This document shows, piece after piece, positions 1 to 8,891 of a DNA stretch of 64,000 nt. The stretch covers positions 1-64,000 of the forward strand of contig CBFDEM010000032.1 of assembly GCA_965603825.1 (NCBI GenBank), given 5' to 3'. The DNA comes from Blepharisma stoltei ATCC 30299 (lineage: Eukaryota; Protista; Ciliophora). A program made the translations under genes and the position numbers. Each line of letters starts with the position of its first letter. Positions within the stretch are counted from its first letter, which is position 1. The notes beneath the pieces are model-generated. The model had not been told where the DNA came from. It worked only from the letters and a program-made list of their open reading frames with translations, and did no database searches.

Positions 1-3000
1 CTAACACCCTAACACCCTATACACCCTAACACCCTAACACCCTAACAACCCTAACACCCTAACACACCCTAACACTACACCCTAACACCCTAACACCCTA
101 ACACCCTAAACAACCCTAACACCCTAACACCCTAACAACCCTAACACCCTAACACCCTAACACCCTAACACCCTAACACCCTAACACCCTAACACACCTA
201 ACACCCTAACACCCTAACACCCTAACACCCTAACACCCTAACACCCTAACACCCTAACACCCTAACACCCTAACACCCTAACACCCTAACACCCTAACAC
301 CCTAACACCCTAACACCCTAACACCCTAACACCCTAACACCCTAACACCCTAACACCCTAACACCCTAACACCCTAACACCCTAACACCCTAACACCCCT
401 AACACCCCTAACACCCTAACACAGCCCTAACACCCTAACACCCTACACCCTAACACCCTAACACCCTAACACCCCAACACCCTAACACCCTAACACCCTA
501 ACACCCTAACACCCTAACACCCTAACACCCTAACACCCTAACACCCTAACACCCTAACACCCTAACACCCTAACACCCTAACACCCTAACACCCTAACAC
601 CCCTAACACCCTAACACCCTAACACCCTAACACCCTACACCCTAACACCCTAACACCCTAACACCCTAACACCCTAACCACCCTAACACCCTAACACCCT
701 AACACCCTAACACCCTAACACCCTAACACCCTAACACCCTAACACCCTAACACCCAAACACCCTAACACCCTAACACCCTAACACCCTAACACCCTAACA
801 CCCTAACACCCTAACACCCTAACACCCTAACACCCTAACACCCAACACCCTAACACCCTAACACCCTAACACCCTAACACCCTAACACCCTAACACCCTA
901 ACACCCTAACACCCTAACACCCTAACACCCTAACACCCTAACACCCTAACACCCTAACACCCTAACACCCTAACACCCTAACACCCTAACACCCTAACAC
1001 CCTAACACCCTAACCCTAACACCCTAACACCCTAACACCCTAACACCCTAACACCCTAACACCCTAACACCCTAACACACCCCTAACACCCTAACACCCT
1101 AACACCCTAACACCCTAACACCCTAACACCCTAACACCCTAACACCCTAACACCCCTAACACCCTAACACCCTAACACCCTAACACCCTAACACCCTAAC
1201 ACCCTAACACCCTAACACCCTAACACACCCTAACACCCTAACACCCTAACACCCTAACACCCTAACACACCCTAACACCCTAACACCCTAACACCCTAAC
1301 ACCCTAACACCCTAACACCCTAACACCCTAACACCCTAACACCCTAACACCCTAACACCCCTAACACCCTAACACCCTAACACCCTAACACCCTAACACC
1401 CTAACACCACTAACACCCTAACACCCTAACACCCTAACACCCTAACACCCTAACACCCTAACACCCAAACACCCTAACACCCTAACACCCTAACACACCC
1501 TAACACCCTAACACCCTAACACCCTAACAACCCTAACACCCTAACACCCTAACACCCTAACACCCTAACACCCTAACACCCTAACACCCTAACACCCTAA
1601 CACCCTAACACCCTAACACCACCCTAACACCCTAACACCCTAACACCCCTAACACCCTAACACCCTAACACCCTAACACCCTAACACACCCTAACACCCT
1701 AACACCCTAACACCTAACACCCTAACACCCTAACACCCTAACACCCTAACACCCTAACACCCTAACACCCTAACACCCTAACACCCTAACACCCTAACAC
1801 CCTAACACCCTAACACCCTAACACCCTAACACCCTAACACCCTAACACCCTAACACCCTAACACCCTAACACCCTAACACCCTAACACCCTAACACCCTA
1901 ACACCCTAACACCCTAACACCCTAACACCCTAACACCCTAACACCCTACCAACACCCTAACACCCTAACACCCTAACACCCTAACACCCTAACACCCTAA
2001 CACCCTAACACCCTAACACCCTAACACCCTAACACCCTAACACCCTAACACCCTAACACCCTAACACCCTAACACCCTAACACCCAACACCCTAACACCC
2101 CTAACACCCTAACACCCTAACACCCTAACACCCTAACACCCTAACACCCTAACACCCTAACACCCTAACACCCTAACACCCTAACACACCCTAACACCTA
2201 ACACCCTAACACCCTAACACCCTAACACCCTAACACCCTAACACCCTAACACCCTAACACCCTAACACCCTAACACCCTAACACCCTAACACCCTAACAC
2301 CCTAACACCCTAACACCCTAACACCCTAACACCCCTAACACACCCTAACACCCCTAACACACCCTAACACCCTAACACCCTAACACCCTAACACCCTAAC
2401 ACCTACCCTAACACCCTAACACCTAACACCCTAACACCCTAACACCCTAACACCCTAACACCCTAACACCCTAACACCCCTAACACCCTAACACCCTAAC
2501 ACCCTAACACCCTAACACCCTAACACCCTAACACCCTAACACCCTAACACCCTAACACCCTACACCCTAACACCCTAACACCCTAACACCCTAACACCCT
2601 AACACCCTAAACACCCTAACACCCTAACACCCTAACACCCTAACACCCTAACACCCTAACACCCTAACACCCTAACACCTAACACCCTAACACCCTAACA
2701 CCCTAACACCCTAACACCCTAACACCCTAACACCCTAACAACCCCTAACACCCTAACACCCTAACACCCTAACACCCTAACACCCTAACACCCTAACACC
2801 CCTAACACCCTAACACCCTAACACCCTAACACCCTAACACCCTAACACCCTAACACCCTAACACCACCCTAACACCCTAACACCCTAACACCCTAACACC
2901 CTAACACCCTAACACCCTAACACCCTAACACCCTAACACCCTAACACCCTAACACCCCTAACACCCTAACACCCTAACACCCTAACACACCCTAACACCC

Positions 3001-3127
3001 TAACACCCTAACACCCTAACACCCTAACACCCCTAACACCCTAACACCCTAACACCCTAACACCCTAACACCCTAACACCCTAACACCCTAACACCCTAA
3101 CCCTAACACCCTAACACCCTAACACCC
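1..3127 (+). repeat. Telomere, (CCCTAACA)n C-rich strand (TGTTAGGG on the G strand), about 390 units
   Basis: Continuous 8-mer tandem array from base 1 with scattered 1-2 nt indel variants. CCCTAACA is the known telomere repeat of heterotrich ciliates (Blepharisma, Stentor). Confidence 0.98.
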
Positions 3128-3128
3128 A

Positions 3129-5027
3129 ACTTGCTCAGCAATTCAGACCAATTCTTTTGATCCACCACTAATGCAAGCTTACCAAGATTATCTTAATGCT
3201 TATCAACAAAAGACATCTCTTTATAATATTACAAAAGATGAAGAAAACAGAACTAATTTAATTATTTATAACACTGAAACTGACACCCAAGAAGTCAAAA
3301 TATTTCAGACTCCAAAATCAATAGACGTAGGCACTTGCATAACTCAACTTCCAAATGGCAAGCTATTCTGCTTTGGTAATTATGAACTTTCTCGAACTAC
3401 AGGACTAATTGATGTGAACGGTGGAATCGAAGTGCTGCCATCTGGAACTTGTAGCAACTGCCCAACATGTATCTATTTTAACAACAGCGTCTATTCCTTT
3501 GGAGGAGATAATGAAAAGGGATTAACTCTATCTAGTAGATTTGATTTTGATCGAAATCGATGAATTCAATTAGCTCCAATGCCAAGAGCTGATTATCGGT
3601 GCAATAGTATAATATTTAATAGAAATATTTTGATTTCTGGATGATATAATACAAATCTTTTGCTATACTCAATTGATATTGATTCTTTCTCGACAATACC
3701 TTATGAGTTTAAAGTATATACAAGAAAGATCTTGATAAATGCAGAGAGACTATATTTGATAGAATGTATGCAAGGATCAATCTATGAAAGCGAAATAGGA
3801 AGTTATTCGAATTGGAGAAGAATAGGAAAATCAAAAATCGATTGCAATCCTGATCAAGTATATTGTTCATATAATAAAGGAGGAATATACATCTCAAATA
3901 TTCAAGGAACATGCAAATCATATTATTACTTTAATTTAGATAAAAAAATCATTATTGATGTTGCTTACTATAATACACATGTTTCACTTAGAAGAGCAGG
4001 TAAAAAGATTGAGGCAATAAAATGAAATAACCAGATCTTTAAGCTCGATCCTTATTATCTGGATGAATGAAGTGCAAAAGATATTAGTCTAAAGTATGTA
4101 GGAGAAAATCTAAAAGAAATCGAATCCTATGACGAAGCAATCAAACTCAATCCAAAAAAAGCTTATTTTTATGATAAAAAAGGCGACGCTTTTTATAATT
4201 TAGAAAGATATCTAGAAGCTATCAAATGTTATGACAAAGCAATCAAACTCAATCCAAATGATCCTTATTTTTACTATAATAAAGGTAACGCTTTTTTAAG
4301 TTGACAAAGATACCTAGAAGCGATCGAATGTTATGAAAAAGCAATCAAACTCAACCCAAAAGATGGTAATTTTTACAATAATAAAGGAAGAGTTTTTTAT
4401 AATTTACAAAGATATCTTGAAGCAATCGAATGTTATGACGAAGCAATCAAGTACCTTCCATTGAAGGCTTATATTTATAATAATAATAAAGGCACAGCTC
4501 TTTTTGATTTAGAAAGATATCTTGAAGCAATCGAATGCTTTGACAAAGCAATCGAATGCTTTGACAAAGCAATTGAATGCTTTGACAAAGCAATCAAGCT
4601 CAATCAAACTGATGCTGATTCTTACTATAAGAAAGGATGCTCTTTAAATAAATTAGGAAGATATCCAGAAGCAGTAAAAAGCTATGATGAAGCAATCAGA
4701 TGCAATCGATATAATGTCAAGTATTATAATATAAAAGGCAATACTCTTTATATTTTAGAGAGATGTCAAGAAGCAATACAATGCTATGATGAGGCAATTA
4801 AACTTGAACCCAATAATCCTTTGCATTTCTGCTGCCGAGCTAGAGTATTTAATAATCTTAGACAAGAAGAAGCAGCTTTAGAGGATTTTAATACTGCTTA
4901 TCATTTGAAGCAAGTAAGTGGTATTTTCACTGGAAATGAATGGAAACTTTCTGAAGAGGATATCAATTTTATTAACGACGTATTAGACCGAGACCGTATT
5001 GAACTACTCCTAAAAATGCAGATTTAA
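3129..5027 (+). CDS. 5'-truncated beta-propeller (Kelch-like) + 7-TPR protein, paralog of 5480..8293
   Basis: One frame from ACT at 3129 to TAA at 5027 when UGA=Trp; joins ORFs 3171, 3660 and 4461. Propeller motifs LPNGKLFCFG and VYSFGG, TPRs of type EAIECYDKAIKLNP. The N-terminal ~289 codons present in the paralog are replaced by telomere. Confidence 0.85.
4527..4595 (+). repeat. In-frame 21-nt tandem triplication inside a TPR (AIECFDK x3)
   Basis: GCAATCGAATGCTTTGACAAA repeated three times (third copy GCAATTGAA...). The paralog has one copy. Confidence 0.92.
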
Positions 5028-5142
5028 ATAAAATTTGATTATTATATTAGAGTTAATAACTAGTTCTAACTTATAGAGAGAGTAATTGCATTATTATTTT
5101 GTTTGAATGTATAAGTGTTATTAAAATTCTAAAATCTTTATT

Positions 5143-5446
5143 TTAAACGGTTCCTACATCAGATAATTGCTTAGAAGCAAGATCAAATTTCCACAGAGCA
5201 TTATTATACAGAACGAAATAAAGGCAGCTCTTATAACGAACAATACTTGACTGATTAATACTTCCAGGCATGCTATTCGTCTCTTTTTGAGCACAACTAA
5301 AAATATTGCTTTCAGCACTTTCAAAAATCCTTCCCCCTTTCTCAAGTGCGTAAACTCTTTCATTTCCTCTCAGCATAAATTTAAGATAATTAGTATTTAA
5401 AGCCAGATTCGGGATATCTTGATATATAATTGTTATAATGATGGCT
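5143..5446 (-). pseudogene. C-terminal remnant of a distant beta-propeller family member
   Basis: YQDIPNLALNTNYLKFMLRGNERVYALEKGGRIFES...LWKFDLASKQLSDV aligns by eye with FSTIPLELARERRKILINAERLYLIECCLGSIYES...YCFNLDQKIMIDV of the flanking genes. The 5' part is absent. Confidence 0.6.
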
Positions 5447-5479
5447 TATTATAATCAAATTTTATTTAAATCTGCATTT

Positions 5480-8293
5480 TTAGGAGTAGTTCAATACGGT
5501 CTCGCCTAATGAGTCATTAATAAAATTGATATCCTCTTCAGAAAGTTTCCATTCATCCCAAGTAAAAACACCACTTACTTGCTTCAAATGATAAGCAGTA
5601 TTAAAGTCCTGTAAAGCTGCTTCTTCTTGTCTGAGATAATTAAATAATCTAGCTCGGCAGCAGAAATGTAAAGGATTATTGGGTTCAAGTTTGATTGCCT
5701 CATCATAGCATTGTATTGCTTCTTGACATCTCTCTAAAATATAAAGAGTATAGCCTTTTATATTATAATATTTGGCATTATTTGGGCTGGTTATGATTGC
5801 TTCATCATAGCTTTTTACTGCTTCTGGATATCTTCCTAATTTATTTAAAGAGCATCCTTTCTTAAAGTAAAAATCAGCATTGTTTGGATTGAGTTTGATT
5901 GATTTGTCAAAGCATTCTATCGCTTCTAGATATCTTTGTAAATCAAAAAAAGCTGTGCCTTTATTATTATTATAAATATCAGCATTGTATGGATTGCACT
6001 TGATTGCTTTGTCATAGCATTCGATTGCTTCAAGATATCTTTGTAAATTATAAAAAACTCTTCCTTTATTATTGTAAAAATCTGCATGGTATGGATTGAG
6101 TTTGATTGCTTTGTCATAGCATTCGATTGCTTCTAGATATTTTTTTAATTTATCTAAAGCGTTGCCTTTGCTATTGTAAAAATTAGCATCTTTTGGTTTG
6201 AGTTTGATTGCTTTGTCATAACATTGGATTGCTTCAAGATATCTTTCTAAATCAAAAAAAGCGTTGCCTTTATAAATGTAAAGATAATCATTGTTTGGAT
6301 TGAGTTTGATTGCTTCGTCATAGCATTCGATTGCTTCTAGATATCTTTCTAACACTTTAAAAGCATCACCTTTTTTTTTGTAAAAATCAATATTGTTTGG
6401 GATGAGCTTGATTGCTTCGTCATAGCATTCGATATTTTCTAGATTTTCTCCTAAATATTTTAGAGTAATATCTTTTACACTTCATTCATCCAGATAATAA
6501 GGATCGAGCTTAAAATTCTGGCTATTTCATTTTATTGCTTCAATCTTTTTACCTGCTCTTCTAAGTGAAACATGCGTATTATAGTAAGCAACATCAATCA
6601 TGATTTTTTGATCTAAATTAAAACAATAATATTCTTTACCTGTTCTTTCAAGATTTGAGATGCATATTCTTCCTTTATTATATGAACAATAAACTTGGGA
6701 AGAAACGCAATTGATTTTTGATTTTCCTATTCGTCTCCAATTCGAGTAAATTCCAACTTCGCTTTCATAGATTGATCCTAGGCAGCATTCTATCAAATAT
6801 AGTCTCTCTGCATTTATCAGAATCTTTCTTCTTTCTCTTGCCAACTCAAGAGGAATTGTCGAGAAAGAATCAATTTCAATTGAGTATAACAAAAGATTTC
6901 TATTTTCATATCCAGAAATCAAAATATTTCCATTAAATATTATACTATTGCACTGATAATCAGCTTTTGGCATTGGAGGTAATTGAATTCATCGATTTTG
7001 ATCCAAATCGAATCTACTAGATAGATTTAAAACTATTCCATTTTCTCCTCCAAAGCAATAGACGCTGCTATTAAAATAAATACATGATGAGTATCCGCAA
7101 GGAGTTCCAGATGGCAGCACTTCGAATCCACCATTCACATCAATTAGCACTGTAATTCCAGAATGTCGATAATAATTGCCAAAACAGAATAGCTTGCCAT
7201 TTGGAAGTTGAGTTATGCAAGTGCCTACGTCTAGTGATTCTGGAGTCTGAAATATTTTAACTTCTTCTGTTTCAGTTTCAGTGTTATAAATAATTAAATT
7301 AGTTTTGTTGTATTTATCAATTGTAGTATTATAAAGAGATGTCTTTTGTTGATAAGCATTAAGATAATCTTGGTAAGCTTGCATTAGTGGTGGATCAAAA
7401 GAATTGGTATGAATTGCTGAGCAAGTTATTCTGAAATCTATTTCTAATTCTGGATTGTTTGGTCTACTAAAAATCTCAGCTGTTTTATTCCTTAAGGTGC
7501 CTATGACGTCTGAAGCGCTGTCTGTTTCATTGTTGATATTATTAGAAACAATGCTCATTTGAAAATTAAGCAAGTTTGTCTCATTATCTGGGGGTTTTTT
7601 TATTGGCTTGTTTTCATTTTTAGGTCCTTTTAAACACTCACTGTTCTCATTTATTATCAAAGAAACTGAATCCTTAACGTTTGCTGACTCTATACTTGCG
7701 GGCTTGTTAGTTTTATTATGCATTTCAGGAGTAATTTGGATACCCCTTTTTTCTAGATATGCTCCGCATATTTCTGTAAAGAAGGATCTATTTAGATTCT
7801 CTAACTTTTGATTGAATATATAATACAACTTTGCACCGTTGTATCAATTTCTGCTGGCTATAGTCATCAATTTTACTTTTTCAATAGCTTCTTGAGGCTG
7901 TAAACTCAATAATCCTAAAATTGGATCTTGTTCTGACTTTAATAATTTTGAAGATTGAGAAATCTTTTCAATGGAATCATTTATTTCATCTAAGTAGCAA
8001 TCCAACTTGCTTGTGAAGTCACCTAAATCTTTTTCTGAATTGGAAAAGGAATCTCTAATTTTTCTTCTCAACTCGCTATATTTTGAATTTTCTTTTGCAA
8101 GTAATATAAGAATTGCTTTTTTTGTCCCTTCACAAGGCTGCATAAAAATCGATTCAAGATTATGAGCTCTATTAGGCAAGTTTGCATGCTCTCCAATATG
8201 CTCTCCGCACAATAAAGTCTCAGGAGAAGAGCATTTGCATGCACACCCAACCTCGTTCATACACCCTGGCAGGGAGCATTTCTTTGCCATCAT
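5480..8293 (-). CDS. B-box-like zinc finger + coiled coil + beta-propeller (Kelch-like) + 8-TPR protein, 937 aa
   Basis: ORFs 7844..8293, 6989..7828, 6527..6973 and 5480..6355 share a frame and are separated only by UGA. N-terminus CSLPGC..CACKC..LCGEHIGEH..H. The last ~8 codons are frameshifted relative to the paralog. Confidence 0.9.
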
Positions 8294-8329: not shown

Positions 8330-8891
8330 GTAACTCTAAAGCAGTAAGATTAAAATTTGCATCATAGGAAATTCTGGAACGGAAAATCGTCAATTTTCCT
8401 CAAATACTTCGATGGCATTTTCAGCGATACTTATATTCCCACCACCACTATAGATTTTGTATTTTTTACTATAGAAAATCTTAAATATAGGTAAAAACGA
8501 TATGAGCAATCGAGATGGTTCGTGCACAATGATCGTATCAGACACAAGTGGCGATATGAGATATAGAACTAGCATTCTTGCTTATTATCCATATGCTTTA
8601 GAATTTCTCCTTATATATAGTGTAAATGATAGAAGTTTATTTGATGATGTAAAGCGTTTTATAAACGATATTAAAAATTGCAACACAAAACGTCCTTTGA
8701 TAATGCTTGCTGGGAATAAATGCGATTTAAAAGATCAAAGAGAAGTCTCATATGAAGGAGCTAAAAATGTCGCTAATGAATTTGATATTTTTTATATAGA
8801 AGTGTCTGCGAAAACTGGTTTTAATACAGAATGCATTTTTCTGCTATTATGCCAAGCTATTCTAAAAGATTTAAATTCAAGGGTTAAATAG
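8330..8891 (+). pseudogene. Rab-like GTPase copy 1, probable pseudogene
   Basis: KIKICIIGNSGT, then a 1-nt deletion in the P-loop (GGAACGGAAAA), no ATG before intron 1. Introns 8330..8344 and 8459..8474. Motifs DTSGD, GNKCDL, EVSAKTG. Confidence 0.8.

Follow-up and report, generated by a model that had tools for sequence, protein, structure and literature searches.

A duplicated Kelch-TPR gene pair with diversifying propeller loops at a chromosome end of Blepharisma stoltei

Why are two neighboring gene copies identical over long stretches and yet different in short, crowded patches of amino acids? This question is raised by two genes, here called copy A and copy B, at the beginning of contig CBFDEM010000032.1 of the ciliate Blepharisma stoltei ATCC 30299 (GenBank assembly GCA_965603825.1), of which positions 1 to 64,000 of the forward strand were analyzed (the window). 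An earlier inspection of the letters by a model, made without database searches (the sequence-only reading), had described both copies as TRIM-like paralogs consisting of a B-box, a coiled coil, a propeller and an array of tetratricopeptide repeats (TPRs), and had proposed them as candidate recognition receptors under diversifying selection. According to the analysis presented here, the two genes probably form a locally duplicated pair of a B. stoltei-specific family at a chromosome end, which provides a repertoire of variable binding proteins with diversifying loops; we give this reading a probability of about 0.65. The two copies and the domains that carry the argument are located as follows:

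3129 to 5027, plus strand: copy A, open frame of 632 codons, beginning within the gene at the telomere
8293 to 5480, minus strand: copy B, full-length gene of 937 codons and a stop codon
3216 to 4025, plus strand: Kelch propeller of copy A, six blades (AlphaFold2 and Foldseek)
6569 to 7381, minus strand: Kelch propeller of copy B (alignment to copy A)
4108 to 4940, plus strand: TPR array of copy A (Pfam TPR_1, E 5.5e-40 on 4305-5024; period 102 nt)
5594 to 6469, minus strand: TPR array of copy B, about 8 units (Pfam TPR_1, E 6e-59, 8 stretches)

Diversifying loops on a conserved propeller scaffold

The propeller was modeled with AlphaFold2 from 41 paralogs (predicted local distance difference test score, pLDDT, 87.7; predicted template modeling score, pTM, 0.87), and the model shows 25 strands forming six four-stranded blades. 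The top Foldseek matches are all kelch domains, namely those of KLHL20, Keap1, KLHL3 and KLHL2 as well as designed SAKe propellers, with a TM score of about 0.69 and E values of 1e-11 to 1e-13. In Pfam, which was searched with the pieces between UGA codons and with the public protein of copy A (P0044), the Kelch score of the propeller is weak where the domain is split at its UGA codons. For residues 1-300 of P0044, Kelch_4 reached 26.9 (gathering score 21.6), Kelch_2 22.7 (21.3) and Kelch_1 20.6 (20.1), so that the gathering scores are passed by one blade and marginally; the Pfam Kelch matches are stronger in paralogs.

Between copies A and B, 62 amino acids of the propeller differ. The loops connecting strands B and C and those connecting strand D to strand A of the next blade contain 38 of these differences in 82 codons, whereas 24 are spread over the 185 other codons (Fisher p 1e-8), and neighboring differences are commoner than in shuffles (p 0.036). 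Loop classes and face were assigned by the strand order of the AlphaFold2 model and not by coordinates. The B-C and D-A loops of a four-stranded blade project from one and the same face, to which peptides bind in Keap1 and KLHL3. The clustering between strands had been claimed in the sequence-only reading on the basis of seven pairs of patches; all seven are present in the protein alignment, each contains at least one site under selection as defined below, and an eighth loop, absent from that reading, was added:

3234 to 3251, plus strand: hypervariable loop, blade I B-C (ITKDEENR), site 22 with a probability P(omega>1) of 1.0
3375 to 3398, plus strand: hypervariable loop, blade II B-C (YELSRTTG), sites 71-73 with P >0.99
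3438 to 3464, plus strand: hypervariable loop, blade II-III D-A (CSNCPT), sites 96-97 with P 1.0
3501 to 3530, plus strand: hypervariable loop, blade III B-C (DNEKGLT), sites 113 and 115-117 with P >0.99
3639 to 3656, plus strand: hypervariable loop, blade IV B-C (WYNT), sites 158-159 with P 1.0
3699 to 3725, plus strand: hypervariable loop, blade IV-V D-A (YEFKVYT), sites 182-183 with P 1.0
3831 to 3854, plus strand: hypervariable loop, blade V-VI D-A (IDCNPD), the eighth loop, sites 225, 226 and 228 with P >0.95
3897 to 3914, plus strand: hypervariable hairpin tip, blade VI B-C (IQGTCKS), sites 245, 246 and 248 with P >0.98

At 3450-3467, 13 of 18 bases differ between the two copies.

Selection was analyzed in 43 distinct intact propeller frames, which were codon-aligned and placed in a maximum-likelihood (ML) tree with 20 edge-disjoint sister pairs, including the pair A/B. 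Counted over these pairs by the Nei-Gojobori method (NG86), the ratio of nonsynonymous to synonymous change (dN/dS, omega) reaches 1.46 for the B-C and 1.28 for the D-A loops, compared with 0.47 for strands and with 0.50 and 0.56 for the A-B and C-D loops, respectively, while the proportion of synonymous differences (pS) is about 0.2 in every structural class. NG86 overstates omega here, because the DNA is AT-rich and transition-biased. With the Goldman-Yang codon model (GY94-F3X4), the ML omega of the top loops is 0.95 for the whole tree and 1.02 for the pairs, and that of the remaining positions about 0.5. Since this class average is about 1.0, the case for omega above 1 rests on the mixture models and on the held-out and single-base tests; an average of 1 over a class with invariant glycine and proline positions implies a faster subset of sites.

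Such a subset is found by the pair-based site model, in which M2a beats M1a with twice the log-likelihood difference (2dlnL) at 439 and 12.7% of the sites at an omega of 4.9. The value is 222 if the top loops are fitted separately with branch lengths of their own, and 387 if three codons on each side of indels are masked. In the cross-validation, sites picked on ten pairs showed an omega of 5.0 or 3.7 in the other ten pairs under the domain-wide clock, and of 2.15 or 2.07 under their own clock (2dlnL 5.5 and 9.3). Codons that differ by a single base give the same picture: 125 nonsynonymous and 13 synonymous differences were counted at the held-out selected sites, where 79% nonsynonymous was expected (p 3e-4), and omega at the remaining sites is 0.60. 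Of the 27 sites with P >0.9, 23 are located in B-C and D-A loops and four at strand ends; none of the 43 sites in A-B and C-D loops was selected (location tests, p 9e-10 and 2e-5). While purifying selection acts on the propeller scaffold, diversifying selection acts on some of the codons of the B-C and D-A loops, which lie on one face, as the sequence-only reading had expected.

The TPR arrays seem to follow the same pattern. That reading had placed their variation in helix A and described helix B as conserved, which agrees with the protein alignment and with the omega values per repeat position in 11 pairs in register. Position 2 has an omega of 2.84 (2dlnL 17.7) and position 13 one of 1.98 (12.1), positions 1, 3 and 6 range from 1.6 to 1.75, and helix B from 0.1 to 0.6; this signal may be inflated by register errors or by exchange between repeat registers. 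Positions 2, 5, 9, 12, 13, 33 and 34 form the concave ligand face and are variable in TPRs at large (PMC1261162). In the present family all seven have an omega of at least 0.96, significantly above 1 at positions 2 and 13. The units share the canonical length of 34 residues with consensus TPR domains of the HOP TPR1/TPR2A type, but differ from them in that positions 2 and 13 are not merely poorly conserved: their omega is significantly above 1 between close paralogs. These values are suggestive of diversifying selection also at the groove positions of helix A.

Several observations count against a diversifying repertoire. Besides the class average of about 1 and the possible inflation of the TPR signal, the most conservative clock yields moderate significance (p about 0.02 and 0.002), and the pair-based M1a/M2a code was custom-written and assumes a constant synonymous rate and no recombination. 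Moreover, many copies of the family are broken by TAA or TAG stops or by frameshifts, and both copies in the window are damaged, A lacking its head and B having a frameshifted tail, which indicates that part of the family is decaying. Finally, the nature of the sequencing runs that cover both genes as RNA is a guess. A rival explanation is neutral turnover, i.e., a subtelomeric, junk-prone family with unconstrained loops (omega about 1) and patches without function, in which copies arise and are lost through duplication, telomere truncation and frameshifts. Large F-box families have been suggested to undergo genomic drift of this kind (PMC3030570), and the ML omega of 0.95-1.02 in the top loops, the copies with stops and frameshifts, the truncation and slipped repeat of copy A and the frameshifted tail of copy B fit it. 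Neutral loops, however, cannot exceed an omega of 1, whereas the held-out sites reach 2.1-5.0 and the single-base changes 125 to 13. In addition, only intact frames were used and their strands remain at 0.47, and the loops of the opposite face are constrained (0.50-0.56) without any selected site among 43. Neutral turnover is therefore considered unlikely.

A further explanation is a mutational or recombinational patchwork, in which the patches arise by conversion of short tracts between paralogs or at a local mutation hot spot. The nearest paralog does shift along the propeller, which is suggestive: codons 61-100 of copy B are 95-97% identical to a copy on chromosome 5 and 85% to copy A, and recombination between paralogs probably occurs. 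Furthermore, the codon pairs at selected sites mostly differ by two or three bases, and the decrease of omega from about 4-5 to 2.1 under the own clock implies about twice the synonymous rate locally. On the other hand, pS is equal in loops and strands (0.20-0.22), and conversion would bring silent changes along, yet omega exceeds 2 under the own clock and in the single-base test. An origin of the patches by gene conversion was rejected, since the max-chi-square signals arise where one sister has retained the consensus and its partner has diverged. For the two loops that were changed most (3450-3469 in A and 6830-6850 in B), no second copy, and thus no donor, exists within two mismatches in the macronuclear genome. 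As the origin of the patches, such a patchwork appears very improbable.

The N-terminal head and the TRIM question

Copy B carries, in front of its propeller, three further regions:

8144 to 8293, minus strand: putative N-terminal zinc module, C6-x4-C11-x7-C19-x-C21-x7-C29-x2-H32-x3-H36-x7-H44
7850 to 8131, minus strand: helical coiled-coil region, residues 55-148 (AlphaFold2 helices 55-85, 90-118 and 133-148)
7424 to 7849, minus strand: low-complexity linker, residues about 149-290, matching no Pfam family and absent from copy A

The coiled coil had been named in the sequence-only reading, together with the propeller and the TPR array, and these three assignments hold: the region is predicted to be helical and matches coiled-coil proteins only, both in profile and in fold searches. 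The case of the B-box is different. From its sequence, the head is predicted to be a two-zinc Cys4-Cys/His3-His module. Its eight ligands have been kept in 13 close paralogs as well as in 58-93 distant representatives. A profile of the first 66 residues retrieved 112 cluster representatives from 1.84 billion proteins, in which the head is almost always N-terminal. Twenty of these matches were traced; ten belong to B. stoltei, nine to environmental assemblies, mostly to a group of about 405 amino acids, and one further match is metagenomic and probably unrelated. Among the 93 head-bearing members, the partner domain is Kelch in 26 and TPR in 8, and one member has a UCH/USP domain. This is P0136 of B. 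stoltei (534 amino acids), in which the putative zinc module is fused to the UCH/USP domain instead of Kelch. Eight proteins of about 400-425 amino acids (P0087, P0097, P0104, P0105, P0110, P0117, P0139 and P0176) combine the putative zinc module with helices and a Kelch propeller without TPRs. Seven of them originate from ENA/Logan environmental assemblies; therefore, the layout of head plus Kelch occurs outside B. stoltei.

Could the head be a divergent B-box, with a function as ligase or in assembly, of a true TRIM-type E3 ligase family, whose Kelch and TPR tails select the substrates for ubiquitination in the manner of TRIM-NHL proteins or BTB-Kelch adaptors? The order of the ligands, CC-CC-CH-HH, resembles what we take to be the B-box1 consensus, and a coiled coil follows. 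A search with ESM features returned clusters carrying PF00643 at 0.83-0.85, which are weak leads, and the fusion of one family head to a UCH/USP domain also points to ubiquitin. However, neither zf-B_box nor RING was found by Pfam in more than 100 family heads (E up to 0.1-1 for RING); these scans covered copy B, the paralog heads, 93 members, for which the 25 commonest families were considered, and 20 more. When 177,635 PDB sequences were searched with profiles of 13 and of 58 heads, B-boxes were absent from the matches up to an E value of 10. The spacings x4, x1 and x7 are unlike those presumably typical of B-box1 (x2, x2 and x4). Foldseek and VIA matched helices only and left the zinc part blank, with a head model whose pLDDT of 66.8 is too low for calling a fold. 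Taken together, the head resembles TRIM in layout, but neither membership in the TRIM family nor the label B-box is supported, and an E3 ligase family of this type is quite improbable.

The comparison with known systems leads to the same distinction. TRIM-NHL proteins (RING, B-box, coiled coil and a six-bladed NHL propeller) have a similar order of zinc head, coiled coil and C-terminal, target-binding propeller. The present family differs from TRIM proteins by the lack of RING and of a detectable B-box, by a propeller of the Kelch instead of the NHL or SPRY type, and by the additional TPR array. In some animal TRIM proteins, the tails evolve under positive selection. BTB-Kelch proteins (KLHL, Keap1) and plant F-box-Kelch proteins share the six-bladed Kelch propeller, with the variable residues of the present family in its B-C and D-A loops, and F-box-Kelch genes have undergone large lineage-specific expansions as well. 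Unlike them, the family shows neither BTB/BACK nor F-box in Pfam scans of both copies and the paralogs, and thus is not known to connect to a cullin ligase; it has the putative zinc module and coiled coil as its head, and a TPR array after the propeller. The NLR-like receptors of fungi and algae are comparable in their highly similar tandem repeats (the TPR units of the family have 102 nt and are 76-79% identical), in variable repeat number and in variation at ligand-face positions. In brown algae, candidate receptors with TPRs have been suggested (PMC3341825). In contrast to the NLR-like receptors, no NACHT or NB-ARC domain was found by Pfam in either copy or in the paralogs, and the strongest signal is located in the Kelch loops and not in the repeats.

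The gene family and its possible role

The macronuclear genome (41.46 Mb, 64 contigs) was searched with the piece of copy B that comprises linker and propeller. At least 140 matches were found, several of them with TAA or TAG stops, so that the large family which the sequence-only reading had assumed does exist. Twenty-eight matches are found in the first 20 kb of a contig, where 3.1% would be expected, which corresponds to an approximately six-fold enrichment (p 4e-15), and further matches are located at right-hand ends among the contigs of known length. All 48 relatives retrieved by a word search (48/48) belong to B. stoltei, and copies A and B group as sisters in the ML tree. The literature that could be searched contained no description of this family.

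The members differ in their domains. The number of TPRs ranges from 0 to about 10. Kinase-headed paralogs have the same linker and propeller and no TPRs, and still other paralogs consist of Kelch only. In L023 (G000:C20:934410-938090) and in P0020, P0040, P0041 and P0043, it is a Ser/Thr kinase (Pkinase, E 4e-43) that replaces the zinc head. A second cluster, with at least five members (L007, L012, L013, L020 and L024), was observed on the same chromosome at G000:C32:739000-755000; several of its members are frameshifted.

These features are best explained by a germline-encoded repertoire of variable binding proteins. Each paralog would bind a different target by the loop face of its propeller and by its TPR groove, and the constant head of putative zinc module and coiled coil, which some paralogs replace by a protein kinase or combine with a USP domain, may provide oligomerization or output. 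New copies could be born by local duplication in the subtelomeres, where telomere addition would also truncate them. The proteins are taken as intracellular, because neither a signal peptide nor a membrane segment is visible in the sequence. Going further, the family might constitute an intracellular repertoire of more than 100 receptors, in which the Kelch loops, acting like complementarity-determining regions ('CDRs'), and the TPR groove confer specificity and the exchangeable heads the output. This extended proposal is conceivable, but rather doubtful. Cytosolic sensing of pathogens or of self and non-self, the role suggested in the sequence-only reading, is a hypothetical one. If true, it would describe a protist counterpart of innate immunity of the TRIM/NLR type, directed against bacteria, symbionts, viruses or prey, which is renewed in the subtelomeres by duplication and telomere-mediated truncation. 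To our knowledge, no innate recognition system of variable receptors has been described in ciliates.

Whatever its targets may be, whether molecules of pathogens, symbionts or prey or proteins of the cell itself, the family pairs a fixed Kelch/TPR scaffold with positively selected contact surfaces, comprises more than 140 copies that are biased toward subtelomeres, and has exchangeable heads. A comparable genomic signature led to the biology of TRIM5, NLR, F-box and MATH-BTB proteins elsewhere, and the genes are testable candidates for target discrimination in a large, free-living predatory cell. Furthermore, the locus shows that macronuclear telomere addition can cut such genes and leave headless fragments.

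Arrangement, damage and transcription of the two copies

The two copies are tail-to-tail inverted repeats with 85-94% nucleotide identity and are flanked and separated by the following features:

1 to 3127, no strand: telomere, (CCCTAACA)n with a few scattered variant units, directly abutting copy A
5028 to 5479, no strand: spacer between the two 3' ends, about 400 nt of it unique

The unit of the telomere repeat is the one published for Blepharisma stoltei (PMC9942806). The tract is 3.1 kb long and is followed by AT-rich DNA in the window; at its junction with copy A (3127/3128), the letters AAC are common to repeat and gene. As the repeat joins the coding sequence of copy A, the macronuclear chromosome ends inside a gene. 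The homology of copy A to copy B begins at residue 290 of B, right after the telomere, and in the alignment the linker as well as the head with its zinc module and coiled coil are missing from copy A. It represents the same gene as copy B, cut at its 5' end by telomere addition. The sequence-only reading, which had treated the two copies as equivalent, has to be revised in this respect, because copy A is a telomere-truncated fragment without a head. In the public annotation it encodes a product of 618 amino acids (P0044), starting at the ATG at 3171, and 42 nt only separate this codon from the telomere. The identity of more than 60 nt around 3163-3227 which had been reported for the two copies lies within the longest exact run that they have in common, 82 nt at 3147-3228 and 7408-7327. 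At the other end, the duplication reaches about 20 nt beyond the stop codons on both sides, with arms at 4989-5046 and 5447-5504 that are 98% identical.

In-frame TGA codons are present in copy A at codons 145, 172, 299, 314 and 392 and in copy B at codons 150, 435, 589 and 604. Since they occupy conserved tryptophan positions, UGA is read as tryptophan. The conserved Kelch tryptophan of the motif NRW (residue 435 of B, 6989-6991) is encoded by TGA in most paralogs (L002-L030), and the frame translated with table 11 stops at residue 434 in most of these loci where it is traceable.

Copy B has a deletion of 1 nt near 5505-5508 (window 5500-5512), where it reads GGCGA and copy A and the consensus GGCCGA. 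Compared with A and the consensus of the family, the final dozen residues are thereby read in another frame and the stop codon is moved, so that the protein ends with ...SLGETVLNYS, whereas A and nearly all complete paralogs end with ...RDRIELL.K.... The TPR array of copy B has a tandem period of 102 nt with 7.4 copies. In place of one whole TPR unit of copy B, copy A alone carries a short repeat, which looks like replication slippage:

4525 to 4595, plus strand: tandem repeat of 21 nt, 3.4 copies, 96%, encoding AIECFDK three times

The possibility that copy A is a faster-evolving pseudogene was rejected by a relative-rate comparison, in which the numbers of unique bases (44-48 in A and 31-37 in B) are not significantly different.

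Contigs of four runs from one study are identical to loop-specific regions of copy A (3354-3449 and 3733-3836) and of copy B (6118-6225 and 7430-7570). The depth of these runs over the spacer is zero at 5065-5240, with a trace of 1.5 in one run at 5241-5416. This pattern fits RNA, where the run type is guessed and the paralogs cross-map. At position 6522 the window has a C and most of the contig depth of the four runs a T, which may be an allele or the result of cross-mapping between paralogs. Next to copy B, the gene at 8400-8890 reads like a small GTPase of the Ras/Rab type.

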